Part shown: one piece after another, positions 10,677 through 31,600 of the stretch
Numbering within the stretch: the stretch's first letter is position 1
Layout: each line of letters starts with the position of its first letter
Origin: Macrostomum lignano
Taxonomy: Eukaryota
Length of the DNA stretch: 64,000 bases
Reading direction: 5' to 3'
Assembly: GCA_002269645.1 (NCBI GenBank)
Contig: NIVC01002244.1
Location: 124,001 to 188,000 of the forward strand
Position numbers and translations under genes: made by a program
The notes under the pieces: model-generated
Databases searched by the model: none
Told to the model about the DNA's origin: nothing
The model's input: the letters and a program-made list of their open reading frames with translations, nothing else

Positions 10677-13600
10677 GTGAGTTGGGGGAGGAAAGGGGAA
10701 GAAGGGAAGAGGGGAGAGAGAGGAAGAGCAGCCATGGATTGCTGAATTCCAATTGTGTTTCCACTTGTTTTCTGTTGCGCATTGCAATTTTATAGTCTTC
10801 TTAGCCTGATGAGTCGATTTGAACAAACCCCTCCTCAAAAAATGCTTTTTTTAATAATTGATGAGTTGGGCGACCGATACGCACGGATCGACAAGAGTCA
10901 ACAGATTGATGGGGACAGACAAGAACGGGCTGAACCAACTCTGCATGAATCCCGCAGACTCGCTCAGCATGACCATCGGCAGTCTGTTCTACAATGAGAC
11001 TCTCGTGATCGAATTCCTGAGCGAAGAAACTCGGCTCCTCACGCCCGAAGCGGCCACCGCCCTGATGAAGGGCCGTTTGAACTTGACGTCGCTAATTTCG
11101 GCATTCGGCGGAAAGAGCATCACGGATATTGCTTGCGATCCCAGCCTCCTGGTGCAGTACATCTCCATCAACTACGAGGGTGACAAGAACTCGACTGTAG
11201 CTGCCCAGATCTCGAACGCGCTGTGCTCGGTGAACTCGTTCAGAGCCAGCAACTTCAGCGACTTTCTGTTTAGCCAGTTTAACATCGGCAAAGCGCTCGG
11301 CCTGTTCAAGCAGGTAGCCGAGTTCACCTACAACTACAACGTCAGCCTGGCCATTGGCGACCTGCAGACTCTGCTGCGCCTGCTGCCCCAGTTCGAAATC
11401 CTGCGAGGTCTCGACAGGGTTGCCGTGAGCAACTGGGCCGTGGCGCTGGTTCAGCAGCTCCAGAAGCTGCTCAGCGCACCTGGATTGCTGTCCAACGCTG
11501 CCTACCTGACGCAGACAGCTGAGCAGGTGGTGCAGCTGATTTCCGCTCTGGTTAGCAACGATCCAGCTAGCAAGGCGCAGTTCGACATGGCCCTGAAGTT
11601 CATGGGCAGCGGGCAGCGGATTCTTGGCACCCTGGTGCAGCTGCAGTCTTTGAGTGAGAACTTTTCCATTGACCTGTCAGACAAAATATCCCTTCTAGAT
11701 ATTAATTAAGACCTCTAAATCAATTTTAGTGCTCAACTCAACTCTGGACAAGATGCTGCCTCCGGAAATTGTCAAACAACTGCTGAGTCGGGGTGTCTCC
11801 ATGTCCGATCTGCAGGCCACGCCTGTGACCCTCGGAGGGGTGAGAGTTCTGTCTGTCTGCATGTCTGTCTGTCTGTCCGTCTGTCTGTCTGTCTGTCTGT
11901 CTGTGTGTCTGTCTGTGTGTCTGTCTGTCTGTCTGTCTGTCTGTCTGTCTGTCTGTCTGTCTGTCTGTCTGTCTGTCTGTCTGTCTGTCTGTCTGTCTGT
12001 CTGTCTGTCTGTCTGTCTGTCTGTCTGTCTGTCTGTCTTAGTGTCTGTCTGTCTGTCTGTCTGTCTTAGTGTCTGTCTGTCTGTCTGTCTGTCTGTCTTA
12101 GTGTCTGTCTTAGTGTCTGTCTGTCTGTCTGTCTGTCTTAGTGTCTGTCTGTCTGTCTGTCTGTCTGTCTGTCTGTCTGTCTGTCTGTCTGTCTTAGTGT
12201 CTGTCTGTCTGTCTGTCTGTCTTAGTGTCTGTCTGTCTGTCTGTCTGTCTGTCTTAGTGTCTGTCTTAGTGTCTGTCTGTCTGTCTGTCTGTCTGTCTTA
12301 GTGTCTGTCTGTCTGTCTGTCTGTCTTAGTGTCTGTCTGTCTGTCTGTCTGTCTGTCTGTCAGTTTAGTTAAGTTTCTTAGCGTCTTGATGAGAATAAGC
12401 TCAAACTTACAAAACTTTCCCAATTTTTGTCTGCAGCTGCTGCAGCTGCTCCAGATGGACCAGACTCTTTCCGCAGCTGTGGTGGGCCAGTTCTGCAGCG
12501 GCGCAATGGAACTAAAAAATCTGTTCAATCCGCCAGCCGCGAATCACCGTCTGCTGATTCAGGTGCAGCAGTTTGCCTGCTCGAATTCGACTGCCATGAC
12601 GGCGTTGAATCTGACGCAGTTTCTGAATGAGGTAAGAAATTTGCGCTCTGGGATGGAGCGGAGAGGCAGATTCTTAAGGACTGAGAGGGAGGCGGAGAGG
12701 CAGATTCTCAAGGACTGAGAGGGAGGCGGAGAGGCAGATTCTCAAGGACTGAGAGGGAGGCGGAGAGGCAGATTCTCAAGGACTGAGAGGGAGGCGGAGA
12801 GGCAGATTCTCAAGGACTGAGAGGGAGGCGGAGAGGCAGATTCTCAAGGACTGAGAGGGAGGCGGAGAGGCAGATTCTCAAGGACTGAGAGGGAGGCGGA
12901 GAGGCAGATTCTCAAGGACTGAGAGGGGAGCGGAGAGGCAGATTCTCAAGGACTGAGAGGGGGTGGAGAGGCAGATTCTCAAGGACTGAGAGGGGGCGGA
13001 GAGGCAGATTCTCAAGGACTGAGAGGGGGCGGAGAGGCAGATTCTCAAGGACTGAGAGGGGGCGGAGAGGCAGATTCTCAAGGACTGAGAGGGGGTGGAG
13101 AGGCAGATTTAATAACCAAACCCGCAACCCAACTCTGATTGCAGTACTATATAACGGCGACCTCCCTCAACATGAGCCAGCTGGTGAGGGACGTCATGAG
13201 CATTTTCCAGCTTCCCGCTGGCGGTAGCGGCACCCTTGTCTCCCAAATTATGGGCATCTTTGGCGATCCCAGCTGGGCAAATTCACTGAAACTGAACGCG
13301 ACTCAGGCTCCATCGGCCAGGTAGGCTACGAATTGTACTTTTAAGGCTTTGAATTTCGCTGAAATATCTGGTTAAGCTACTTTTGTACTCTTATGTTAAG
13401 TCAAATTTAATCGTTATAAAAACTTGCAGCCTCGCTATGCTATCAAGAATTCTCGACCAGTCGCCATTCGGCCCGACGGAACGCTCTGCTCTGCTGTTTG
13501 GCACTCATTTTCTGCTGCTGCAAGTTGAAGCGCTCAAAATGAAAACCAGTAAGTTAATCCCATCACCCCTTTAACTATAAATAATCACTAGTTGTTAAGC

Positions 13601-28600: not shown

Positions 28601-31600
28601 TCAACCGAACATGAGTGCGTCTGAGTGTCAGGTGTCAACCGAACATGAGTGCGTCTGAGTGTCAGGTGTCAACCGAACATGAGTGCGTCTGAGTGTCAGG
28701 TGTCAACCGAACATGAGTGCGTCTGAGTGTCAGGTGTCAACCGAACATGAGTGCGTCTGAGTGTCAGGTGTCAACCGAACATGAGTGCGTCTGAGTGTCA
28801 GGTGTCAACCGAACATGAGTGCGTCTGAGTGTCAGGTGTCAACCGAACAGCTGCCATCACCGTGCAGTTTGAATTAAGCAAACAAATCGCTCTAAAACTC
28901 AACAGAGCTTCATCGCCTCAATGTCGGACGCCGATCTCTACAACGCTTTGTGTAGCCCGACTAAGATCAGCCAGATCATCAGCTTCCCGGCCGTGCTCTC
29001 CGTGGACATGGGCGCAGTGTCCAGAGTCATCTGTCAACAGATGGCCACGTCACCAGCTGACCGGCAGAGAATTCTTCTACTGATTCGCGGCGCCACCGCT
29101 CCGAACTTTGGCGGGCTGGACCTGAGCGGATGGATCCGGGCGCTGACTAATCTCAACAACCTGTTGGAGCAGCTCAACCAGCTGCAAGGCATCCGCGAGC
29201 TGCTCAGCAATTTTGATATTCGACGAATGTCCGAGTACGAGTCGGTTATTCTGTCGCTCATCAGAAGCTTCCCGGGAGAGCAGCTTCAGAAAATGTGAGC
29301 TCATATGATAAAATACCCCAGCCGTAGAATTATCCTCCCCTTAGAGACAGCTTTTTTATTGTGTTGACGCCATCCTGGGCCACCATCGTGGATTTGCCTG
29401 CATCAAGGGGCGCCAGAACCAGGAGGAACAAGGAATCAACTGCTAAAATAATTTTGCCAGCCAATTGGGGGGATCCGGCCCCATAGCCCCCTGAGGCTAT
29501 AAGCTCCTACCTCTGTGTGTTGAGTTCCGTGCTTTCCCACCTTGATTTGAGACTCTTAATTTGACAAAAAGGGCCAACCCCCAAGGCCCAGAGAGTGTAA
29601 ATACATGAGGATTAGAAAATCAGGGTCGTTGTACATCCTTTGAAAACGTGTGTGCAAATCCGTGTGCGCGCACGTGTTCAGGAGTCCCCTTCATATTGAT
29701 AATTGAAAAAGTACCCCAGCATCATTGAATCACCACTAACATATTTTCTTGTCAATCTGCATTATTTCAGAGGCTATTCGCTGGTAAAAGATTTGCAAGG
29801 ATTGTCCACCGACCCGGCCTGGGCGAGCTTAATGTCGGATCTCACCTTGTTCTTCAAGTCGCTGCGCCTTTTCGACTTTGCTAAGCCTTTGTTCCCAATA
29901 AAATGTAAGCAAATATGAGCGTATAGATTCATCAATCATTAAATCATGAGATGTCATATACAATGCATGGAGGCTTCCTCGCTTCTAATACTTTACAGTG
30001 CAAGTCAAAGACTTCGTGGACGATCCAAGTGCAGTCAGGCAGTATCTACAGCGCCAGGGATTTCCTGCCGAAGTTTCCGATCTCATCTTGAGCTCGTATC
30101 TGTCCACTGAACAGGTTAGATTGGCCGAATTTAGTTCGTAGCTCGTATTTTCAAGCCTAAAAGTTTCCACTGCAAAGGTAAACTGATATTTACATTTTGA
30201 AATTTCAGCTTTTCAACTTCTCGCTGAAACTCAGCCTCCCCGAAGCTCTGTGCAACGCTGGCAAGCTACAGAGCCTCATTGACTTCTCAAACGTGACCTA
30301 CAATGTCTCCAGCCTGGTCGAGCAGCTCTGCGTTAACAGGACACTTCGAGACGTGGAAAACATCACGGAGACAATTCTCAAGATGGGCAACTTTGGCCGG
30401 TTTTTCATGAAACAGTTTGGCCAGCAGGCCATCGACAGCTTGCTCAACAGCTCCGGAGTGACCCTCGTCGACCTGAAAGATGCCATTCAAGCAGTTCAAG
30501 ACACCGGCAACGCGTTGCAGAACGCCTTCAATGTGCTGCAGGAGCTGGTCGGTGTTGTTGCAAGTTTCAATCCAGGCTCGAGCGATATGGGCTGTGAGTG
30601 AAATCCGTTGCTTTTACATGGTTCTAGTGTATTAGAAGCGAGTAGGAAGCTTGAAACGGTAGAGATCTCAGCTTGTTGGGCCTTAGACGGAACCAAATTA
30701 TTTAGGAACTAATAATGTATGCTATCTGTTATGCGGATTGTCCCATACCGTACATGTACTGTAATGGCGTCAAAAGAGGCATTGAATGGCACTGAATCGT
30801 CATCATTTGGCCATTATCATACCACATACATACTACGTATACCTGTAACTGTAAGGTACTACACATCCGCAAGCTAAGTTTGCTGCTCTCAAACAAATTG
30901 CAGCTCCAAACGGACTCGAAGGTATCAGCCAGGCGGTGTGCGGGACCAGCGGAAAGTTCAACTTCACCAGCGTCTATGGCATCAGCCTTAGCCCCGGCAG
31001 TACTGATTCGGGACGCCGACGCAAGAGACGCTCCACTCACTCAACTACTTACACCTACGAGCTCGGCCAGCTGGCTAGCAATGAGTTCTGCCGAAATCTC
31101 TACGACCTGACTCAGAAATCAACAGCCGGAAGGGTCGGCTGGACCTACGTTAAGCCAATCATTCGAGGACGCGTGATTGTAACGCCTGACACGAACACGA
31201 CGCGAAGCTTGATGAGCGGAGCCCAGGAACAGTTCACCAAGCTGTTTAACCTGCAGGAGCTGGCTAACAGTCTGGCTGGCTTGCTGCCAACGGCTACGGG
31301 AACCTCAGCCGCCAGTGTCTTGGCGAATCTACTGTCCAATCCCCTGGCCAGCTCTGCTTTCTCTGGTATCCTCGGGTCGTCAACCAACCTGACATCCATG
31401 CAAAACCTGTTGAAAGTCTTCACTGGCAATACTACTTCGAACTCTTCAAGCACAAATCAAATGCTAAAATGCTGCAGAACTTCACCAGCTGCATCGAAAC
31501 CAGCCGTTTGGATTATTACGCCACCGGAAGCAGTCAGTACGATGCTGGTCTTCAGGCTGCCCTATCGGAAAACCGCCTGCTCGCTGTGATCGATTTTGAA

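Follow-up and report, generated by a model that had tools for sequence, protein, structure and literature searches.

What occupies the enormous first extracellular domain (ECD1) of an ABCA transporter gene in the flatworm Macrostomum lignano? The gene lies in a stretch of 64,000 nucleotides (contig NIVC01002244.1 of assembly GCA_002269645.1, positions 124,001 to 188,000 of the forward strand), hereafter called the window, whose coordinates are used throughout. An earlier reading made from the letters alone (the sequence-only reading) had proposed that one ECD1 sub-domain was amplified about 15-fold as cysteine hairpin modules. The analysis reported here leads to the conclusion, to which we give a probability of roughly 0.85, that the gene encodes an ABCA lipid transporter of M. 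lignano whose ECD1 contains ~16 tandem, highly diverged copies of the domain called the lid in ABCA1 and ABCA4; this is a structural and evolutionary statement. The proposed amplification stood, as a real internal repeat of the lid, but its unit turned out to be a domain of ~220 amino acids (aa) and not a module of 25-40 aa limited to the hairpin.

The window carries a single full-transporter gene of the ABCA type on the + strand, at about 10077-37510, where a chain of stop-free stretches runs over ~10.0-37.5 kb. A first model was built ab initio by combining codon log-odds with dynamic programming over GT-AG introns and contained 43 exons coding for 5,008 aa. It was corrected with the junctions of a public model, P0152 (UniProt A0A1I8GZ96, 'ABCA2', 5,452 aa), which is 98-100% identical to the first model from aa 1785 on in every large aligned block: the segments 24548-24720 and 27815-27939 were added or extended and the last exon was set to 37238-37510. 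The refined model (model 2) has 44 exons and encodes ~5,190 aa, not counting the residues that fall in an assembly gap. The ATG at 10077, with its GTGAGT donor, is a plausible candidate start. P0152 itself is chimeric, as it begins in the middle of the gene at 21784 and runs into the downstream BIR/RING genes on both strands and into further loci, up to 63470.

The ABCA identity proposed in the sequence-only reading was confirmed. Pfam detected ABC2_membrane_3 (PF12698) and ABC_tran (PF00005) twice each, so that one polypeptide carries two ABC-2-type transmembrane domains (TMDs) as well as a pair of nucleotide-binding domains (NBDs), and in both NBDs the Walker A, signature and Walker B motifs are intact (GPNGAGKST, LSGGQKRRL and ILDEPT in one; GPNGSGKST, LSGGQRRKL and LLDEPS in the other). 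The C-terminal 1,700 aa of the first model matched human ABCA1 with E=7e-203, followed by ABCA4, ABCA7 and ABCA3. At the other end, the N-terminal ~110-190 aa aligned with the first transmembrane helix (TM1) and the start of ECD1 of ABCA7 (26-109) and ABCA1 (26-196) with E≈2e-5, an alignment that includes the conserved N-terminal cysteine motif (C...GCNLDNQC). Between TM1 and TM2 a large ECD1 bearing this motif was found, at about aa 55-3,740 of model 2. A paralogue, PAA72003.1, is 69% identical to the gene product in TMD1. The parts of the gene are the following:

10077-10450, + strand: TM1 and conserved start of ECD1 (Cys 54, 75 and 81; GCNLDNQC), from the ABCA7/ABCA1 alignment
10212-10305, + strand: TM1
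10451-30541, + strand: tandem array of lid-like units, ~16 units of ~220 aa (aa ~71-3404 of model 2)
30542-31900, + strand: C-terminal portion of ECD1, conserved and corresponding to the base and tunnel part of ABCA1/4; cysteines at 30939, 31089, 31490 and 31880
31900-37510, + strand: transport core, with TMD1, NBD1, R1, TMD2 with ECD2, NBD2 and C-terminus

Our model and the public one differ over several segments. The segments 31416-31477 and 33529-33602 are excised in ours as GT-AG introns of 62 and 74 nucleotides, and the public model reads through them and shifts frame; the cause is either 1-nucleotide differences between assemblies or an error of the public model. Inside TMD2, 168 nucleotides (35096-35263, 55 aa) that we kept as coding are spliced out by the public model.

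The 15 pairs of cysteine codons reported in the sequence-only reading were all recovered as TGC or TGT, each pair being in frame and within one stop-free stretch of the + strand, and an additional pair was found at 26543/26663 with 39 residues between its cysteines (x39). Pair statistics were computed on the first spliced model, over aa 82-3620 with 45 cysteines. Adjacent cysteines separated by 20-40 residues occurred 18 times, against 8.1±2.5 in shuffled sequences (P≈1.5e-4), and 16 of these 18 pairs had one of the hydrophobic residues A, F, I, L, M and V before each cysteine, against 1.6±1.3; none of 20,000 shuffles reached 16. The modal spacing is x25, as had been claimed. For most units the first cysteine recurs every 186-230 aa, a period that the sequence-only reading had not given, at aa 205, 434, 640, 870, 1074, 1295, 1502, 1723, 1943, 2162, 2391, 2584, 2776, 2910, 3096 and 3308 of model 2. 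Between or inside the units, extra cysteine clusters were also observed away from the invariant positions: CTSC...C at aa 753-763 (14626-14656), CLTTGC at aa 1351-1356 (18860-18875) and CVGC at aa 1527-1530 (20606-20615).

A repeat of this kind is difficult to see by direct comparison. Pairwise identity between units is only about 10-25%, the unit sequences diverge fast and only the two cysteines are invariant; on account of this low identity, an assembly artefact or a recent duplication was ruled out. No Pfam family matched any ECD1 exon or unit, and a hidden Markov model (HMM) built from four of the flatworm's own units found no other unit above decoys. After masking of the cysteines, Smith-Waterman comparison placed 31 of 108 unit pairs in register within 15 aa; few z-scores exceeded 4, one example being units 8 and 10 (z=8.6 over 149 aa, offset -5), and the support drawn from this method is modest. 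The decisive comparison was made with a cross-species HMM of 80 units from eight relatives, containing no flatworm sequence. On the flatworm protein it identified 10 domains of 14-46 bits that tile ECD1 in register, whereas the best of 200 decoys (window-shuffled or reversed) scored 4.9 bits. With every cysteine hidden on both sides, HMM and target alike, the number of domains above the decoy maximum of 9.7 bits was still 8 (11.6-31 bits). Rounds 1-2 of the iterated searches were free of decoy domains, and round 3 admitted a single one, among ~220 hits.

Each unit was further scored with the foreign-species HMM against 300 shuffles of itself, with and without masking of the cysteines. In the following list, on the + strand throughout, the bit scores of both versions are given where available, together with the introns, whose offsets are counted from the cysteines of the pair (minus, before the first cysteine, C1; plus, after the second, C2):

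Unit 1, 10451-11379: Cys 11134/11224; 37.9 bits, 0/300 shuffles; masked 23.3
Unit 2, 11443-13224: Cys 12494/12578; 24.5 bits, 0/300; masked 18.2; introns C1-56 phase 1, C1-19 phase 0, C2+18 phase 0
Unit 3, 13250-14601: Cys 14157/14262, extra Cys 14292; 4.3 bits (not significant); introns -102 phase 2, -68 phase 1, -15 phase 0, +28 phase 0
Unit 4 (candidate), 14602-15210: Cys 14977/15055; 0.1 bits; hhalign E=0.19; single exon; supported by the C-x25-C hairpin and by position only
Unit 5, 15211-16219: Cys 15929/16007; 13.8 bits, 0/300; masked 8.7, 0/300; introns -104 phase 2, -53 phase 1
Unit 6, 16256-18973: Cys 17821/17899; 46.0 bits; masked 38.5; introns -106 phase 2, -60 phase 1, +28 phase 0
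Unit 7, 18977-20791: Cys 20531/20633, extra Cys 20606 and 20615; 22.7 bits; masked 14.6; spans the gap
Unit 8, 20792-21804: Cys 21194/21272; 27.0 bits; masked 15.5
Unit 9, 21862-22510: Cys 22195/22267; 54.5 bits; masked 40.1
Unit 10, 22601-23373: Cys 23113/23197; 48.7 bits; masked 35.3
Unit 11, 23425-24664: Cys 24305/24377; 39.0 bits; masked 24.2; introns -102 phase 2, -13 phase 0, +26 phase 0
Unit 12 (weak), 24665-25611: Cys 25320/25383; 9.9 bits, 0/300; masked 3.1, 9/300; introns -86 phase 2, +33 phase 0
Unit 13 (weak), 25612-26283: Cys 25987/26110 (x40); 11.8 bits, 1/300; masked, nothing; hhalign E=0.23; intron C2+25 phase 0
Unit 14 (doubtful), 26284-26764: Cys 26543/26663 (x39); 8.9 bits, 3/300; introns discordant with the other units
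Unit 15, 26765-29145: Cys 28951/29032; 45.4 bits; masked 31.9; introns -100 phase 2, -57 phase 1, -15 phase 0
Unit 16, 29146-30541: Cys 30251/30329; 42.5 bits; masked 27.9; introns -98 phase 2, -53 phase 1, -14 phase 0

Units 1, 2, 5-11, 15 and 16 (11 of 16) exceeded every one of their 300 shuffles, and 10 units were still above every shuffle after masking. An internal repeat signal, the absence of which had been named in the sequence-only reading as fatal to it, is present: most of the units are recognised by the cross-species HMM even when the cysteines are hidden.

The introns provide a second line of evidence, independent of protein composition. Plotted along the HMM, they fall repeatedly at four sites, each with a constant phase: at HMM ~26-33 (46 in one unit), i.e. 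C1-100, in phase 2, in 7 units or more when judged from the Cys offset; at HMM ~67-76, C1-56, in phase 1, in 7 units; at HMM ~115-116, C1-15, in phase 0, in 6 units; and at HMM ~170-180, C2+25, in phase 0, in 7 units. Pairs of introns concordant in both position and phase numbered 59, against 9.0±3.0 by chance, and the highest value reached in 5,000 null trials was 23. No intron interrupts any hairpin. Unit 3, although invisible to the HMM, possesses the full set of four recurrent introns, each in the correct phase; units 12 and 13 possess part of this set, and units 4 and 14 have none of it. The recurrence of intron positions and phases shows that the array arose by tandem duplication, the duplicated segment comprising four to five exons.

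These data bear on one alternative, in which there is no true repeat and the cysteine pairs arise by chance from the Leu/Ala/Ser/Gln-rich helical composition of the region. The low identity between units, the blindness of the four-unit HMM to the remaining units and the five units that fail the Cys-masked test speak in favour of such an origin. It accounts neither for the shuffle tests on the cysteine pairs, nor for the cross-species HMM with or without cysteines, nor for the concordance of the introns, nor for the significant match to the ABCA4 lid described below. By the cross-species HMM, the per-unit shuffles and the intron concordance, it is refuted for at least 11-12 units, and we consider its probability very low. 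The earlier count of ~15 modules can be specified accordingly: of the 16 units, 11 are demonstrated by sequence and a twelfth by its four conserved introns; for two others the introns give partial support, and the last two are recognised by the cysteine pair alone. The secure units are about 12-14 in number, and two (4 and 14) are candidates only.

The relationship of the units to known ABCA domains was examined with a profile, A1, made from 21 internal units, none of them adjoining TM1 (five from the window, the rest from other phyla). A1 matched human ABCA4 102-287 with E=1.5e-9 and ABCA1 117-267 with E=0.005, and its two invariant cysteines fell on 'DIACSE...RYALCSL' of ABCA4; the likeness to this segment of ABCA4 and ABCA1 noted in the sequence-only reading is therefore borne out. 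An iterated HMM in which the first units were included also matched a fish ABCA1 at 90-282, with 62.7 bits, and, over 70-294, an insect protein of ABCA1/7-like type. The lid, a sub-domain of ~200 aa, is the distal part of the ECD and corresponds in ABCA4 to residues 101-300; it is flexible, poorly resolved and only 24% identical to that of ABCA1 (Scortecci et al., PMC8501128). Liu et al. could likewise not assign residues in it and described it as hollow (PMC7932691). Sequence homology between the flatworm units and the ABCA4 101-300/ABCA1 lid was thus found, and as judged from sequence comparison the units are homologous to one another, to the units of other phyla and to the ABCA4/ABCA1 lid.

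The position of the array is in agreement with this homology. The sequence that directly follows unit 16 aligns to ABCA1 351-414 and ABCA4 365-437, and further on to ABCA1 from 539 onward, so that the array takes the place of the single lid. On its N-terminal side lies the conserved first segment of ECD1, and on its C-terminal side the conserved segment that in ABCA1/4 comes after the lid. The ABCA4/ABCA1 lid occupies the same place in ECD1, from the N-terminal base segment to the segment around ABCA4 C370/ABCA1 C355, but it is single in ABCA1, ABCA4 and ABCA7, whereas the flatworm protein has ~16 tandem copies.

The only run of N in the window (19831-20327) lies inside unit 7. The exon upstream of it (acceptor 19744/19745, tttag before G) is open into the N run, and the frame of the downstream exon is closed by a TGA at 20357-20359, so that this exon must begin at the acceptor 20372 or 20398. 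Since it starts only after the stop, the flanks of the gap do not form one continuous frame, and the gap therefore conceals a donor site, with the exon end before it and part of the intron. In the unit straddling the gap, ~125-145 aa precede the first cysteine, depending on the model, which is about the normal length, and the C-terminal two thirds of unit 7 match the repeat HMM. On the basis of this usual length and this match, few codons at most appear to have been lost. No listed cysteine pair depends on the gap.

Could these exons belong to two or more genes, for instance an upstream repeat protein and a downstream ABCA with a boundary at or near the gap? Such a division would be compatible with the N run, with a model built without transcripts and ab initio upstream of 21784, and with the beginning of P0152 at that position. 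P0152 is, however, a plainly unreliable model, unit 7 bridges the gap at about normal length, and in the ABCA topology one ECD1 has to connect TM1 with TMD1, which begins at 31900. Moreover, unit 1 adjoins the conserved N-terminus of the ABCA protein without a break, as the last unit does the conserved segment that follows the lid, and proteins of other phyla, RefSeq models included, show the same order in one polypeptide, with the first unit near the N-terminus, then many lids and then the transport core. We regard a split into several genes as improbable.

A full HMMER search with the TMD1 exon yielded many proteins of 3,000-7,000 aa. Several of these relatives contain C-x25-C pairs every 205-235 aa, and 3-20 units were detected in relatives, which include proteins of molluscs, arthropods and one echinoderm; examples are:

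Tachypleus XP_076323090.1: 11 units
Sinanodonta KAL3877832.1: 10 units
Patella XP_050393414.2: 10 units
Antedon XP_071965866.1: 9 units
Vespula KAF7403454.1: 5 units
Assembled protein P0012: 20 units
Assembled protein P0155: 14 units

The five named invertebrate giants, variously annotated as 'ABCA1-like', 'ABCA13' or 'uncharacterized', share with the flatworm protein the same ~220 aa unit with its C-x25-C pair and group with it in a rough tree. They differ from it in copy number, and beyond the first and last units their pairwise similarity to the flatworm array is almost nil. None of them is annotated with a repeat or a domain over the array region. Neither the literature searched, to which most subscription journals do not belong so that absence is not proof, nor Pfam contained a description of the lid-repeat architecture, in agreement with the sequence-only reading, in which no earlier description was known. 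An ABCA with a multiplied lid is common to a broad set of invertebrates and appears to be undescribed.

The size of the protein raises the question of its relationship to vertebrate ABCA13, whose long N-terminal region is described as lacking known domains (PMC7948424; PMC13161189) and whose structure was qualified as largely unexplored in a 2026 review (PMC13161189). If the flatworm gene were the orthologue of ABCA13, its giant ECD1 would be the known 'long N-terminal region' and nothing new. Both proteins are full ABCA transporters of ~5,000 aa, the flatworm's having ~5,200 aa and the human one 5,058 aa; in both, the ECD1 exceeds 3,000 aa. In the TMD1 search vertebrate ABCA12/13-type proteins (E ~1e-54 to 1e-38) ranked above ABCA1-type proteins (4e-31). 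In addition, mammalian ABCA13 contains a clear lid-like domain at the end of its insert (P0050 2906-3157), just before the conserved part of ECD1, with 76-81 bits and an hhalign probability of 97%. This domain is nevertheless the only one detected: when the repeat profile was aligned by hhalign with the ECD1 alignment of vertebrate ABCA13, the rest beyond P0050 2906-3157 scored E≥0.03, and phmmer with the flatworm ECD1 gave no match in vertebrate ABCA13. Unlike the flatworm array, the mammalian insert (aa ~160-2900) is without periodic cysteine pairs and lid repeats are undetected in it, so that homology of the flatworm ECD1 insert to the N-terminal region of vertebrate ABCA13 was found by none of phmmer, the repeat HMM and hhalign. 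In the fish giants, the repeat HMM and hhalign found no lid-like domain. Finally, a rough neighbour-joining tree of TMD1-NBD1, computed without support values (no bootstrap) and with the flatworm on a long branch, put the flatworm protein among the multi-lid proteins of invertebrates, separate from the ABCA12/13 group of vertebrates.

On account of the phmmer result, the single lid-like domain of mammals, its absence from the fish giants and the grouping in the tree, the gene is therefore not filed as ABCA13. That the gene is simply the flatworm's ABCA13 and nothing new is rather unlikely in our opinion, and the repeat would be undescribed even under orthology, given that no domain is known in the ABCA13 N-terminal region. 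The fish giants P0010 (Lepisosteus, 5,270 aa), P0022 (Umbra, 5,188 aa), P0016 and P0006 cluster in the rough tree with proteins of ABCA12 size and have few periodic cysteine pairs. Giant ECD1s may have arisen more than once.

A structural model was obtained with AlphaFold2 for unit 8 (20789-21442), using an alignment of 20 units as rows. The model is mostly helical, with 12 helices, a mean predicted local distance difference test score (pLDDT) of 69 and a predicted template modelling score (pTM) of 0.54. Its best-predicted blocks (pLDDT 89-91) contain both cysteines, the first of which ends a helix that is followed by a ~17-residue loop, with the second cysteine in the next helix. From the invariance of the cysteines and their helix-loop-helix placement at the highest pLDDT, we predict for each unit a bundle of helices that a single disulfide, joining the two invariant cysteines, would clamp together. 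The repeat region also contains 78 N-x-S/T sequons against 28.8 expected, several of them directly after a cysteine (CNGS, CNST, CSNLT), an enrichment that fits an extracellular or luminal location of the array as far as sequence can indicate it. Downstream of the array, the cysteine at 30939 (...AVCGTSG...) is situated 50 residues before the equivalent of ABCA4 C370, and from this spacing we infer that it is the counterpart of ABCA4 C324, the partner of C75.

The main reading has points against it, which are to be set beside these data. The equivalence between the cysteine at 30939 and ABCA4 C324 derives from spacing only. In a Foldseek search of the PDB with the unit 8 model (pLDDT 69), no hit reached E≤0.001, the best one having E≈1, and no ABCA chain was present in the 50 matches listed; lids are poorly modelled in the entries. 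Published lists of ABCA4 disulfides are without lid cysteines (PMC7932691, PMC8501128), and as the lids are poorly resolved in the solved structures, a lid disulfide is undocumented there. By sequence, units 3, 4, 12, 13 and 14 are weak or null after cysteine masking. The gene model was derived from genomic DNA and not from transcripts, with the assembly gap interrupting unit 7; its 5' 1,800 aa are contained in none of the annotated proteins found, and the sole public model is the chimera that starts at 21784.

How might ~16 lids work? The core of the protein would most likely be an ordinary ATP-driven ABCA lipid floppase. Cys75 and the cysteine at 30939 would pin both ends of the array at the base of the ECD, as C75-C324 does in ABCA4, which would make the array a glycosylated loop or stalk of giant size rising from the top of the ECD tunnel. 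There it would lengthen or cap the exit path of the lipid, or else anchor the transporter to a partner that is extracellular or luminal. We propose this stalk or conduit role only tentatively, as one possibility. The roles suggested in the sequence-only reading, a lipid tunnel or an involvement in mucus or adhesive lipids, are likewise speculative.

Alternatively, the array may stand outside the lipid path and serve as a glycoprotein scaffold for sorting or partner binding, as the N-terminal region of mouse ABCA13, which is required for vesicular localisation and in the absence of which that protein is mislocalised and cholesterol internalisation is lost (PMC7948424). The density of N-glycan sequons and the fast divergence of units in which only two cysteines are invariant are compatible with such a function. 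In ABCA1/4, however, the lid's interior is hollow and continuous with the tunnel (PMC7932691), and homology between the flatworm array and the mouse region was undetected by the repeat HMM and hhalign. The scaffold function is a serious possibility that we place somewhat short of an even chance. In a more extended proposal, the lid repeat would be an undescribed domain family defining a metazoan-wide clade of giant ABCA proteins (3-20 lids). Stacked on one another, glycosylated and clamped by disulfides, the lids would prolong the lipid tunnel by tens of nanometres and bring lipid to an extracellular layer, and the N-terminal region of ABCA13 in vertebrates would derive, in strongly degenerate form, from the same array. 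Taken as a whole, this proposal is doubtful and is put forward as a conjecture.

The sequence around and downstream of the gene shows further features, listed here:

40860-41846, + strand, and ~45437-46465: two near-identical inverted open reading frames (ORFs) with a BIR-like CxxC...H...C and a C-terminal RING, i.e. inhibitor-of-apoptosis-like (IAP-like); both are GC-rich and (GACA)n arrays separate them
11699-12300 (inside an intron of the ABCA gene), 44636-45450, 46358-48520 and 55048-56114: four long arrays of (GACA)n/(TGTC)n type, which create long spurious ORFs in several frames
58988-59341 and 63219-63680, both - strand: two ORFs, which by eye resemble, one of them, a tetraspanin N-terminus and, the other, a PHD-type zinc finger

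The function of the ABCA ectodomain is still debated, and ABCA13 is the largest ABC protein. In this context, the present finding supplies the definition of a domain, a lid of ~220 aa with two invariant cysteines and no Pfam model, multiplied 3-20 times in invertebrate transporters. The family offers a natural series of lid copy numbers for asking what the lid does, the profile can serve to annotate proteins now labelled 'uncharacterized' or 'ABCA1-like', and a testable hypothesis is provided for the origin of the ABCA13 insert. M. lignano is a flatworm well established in the laboratory, which should make a loss-of-function test practicable.

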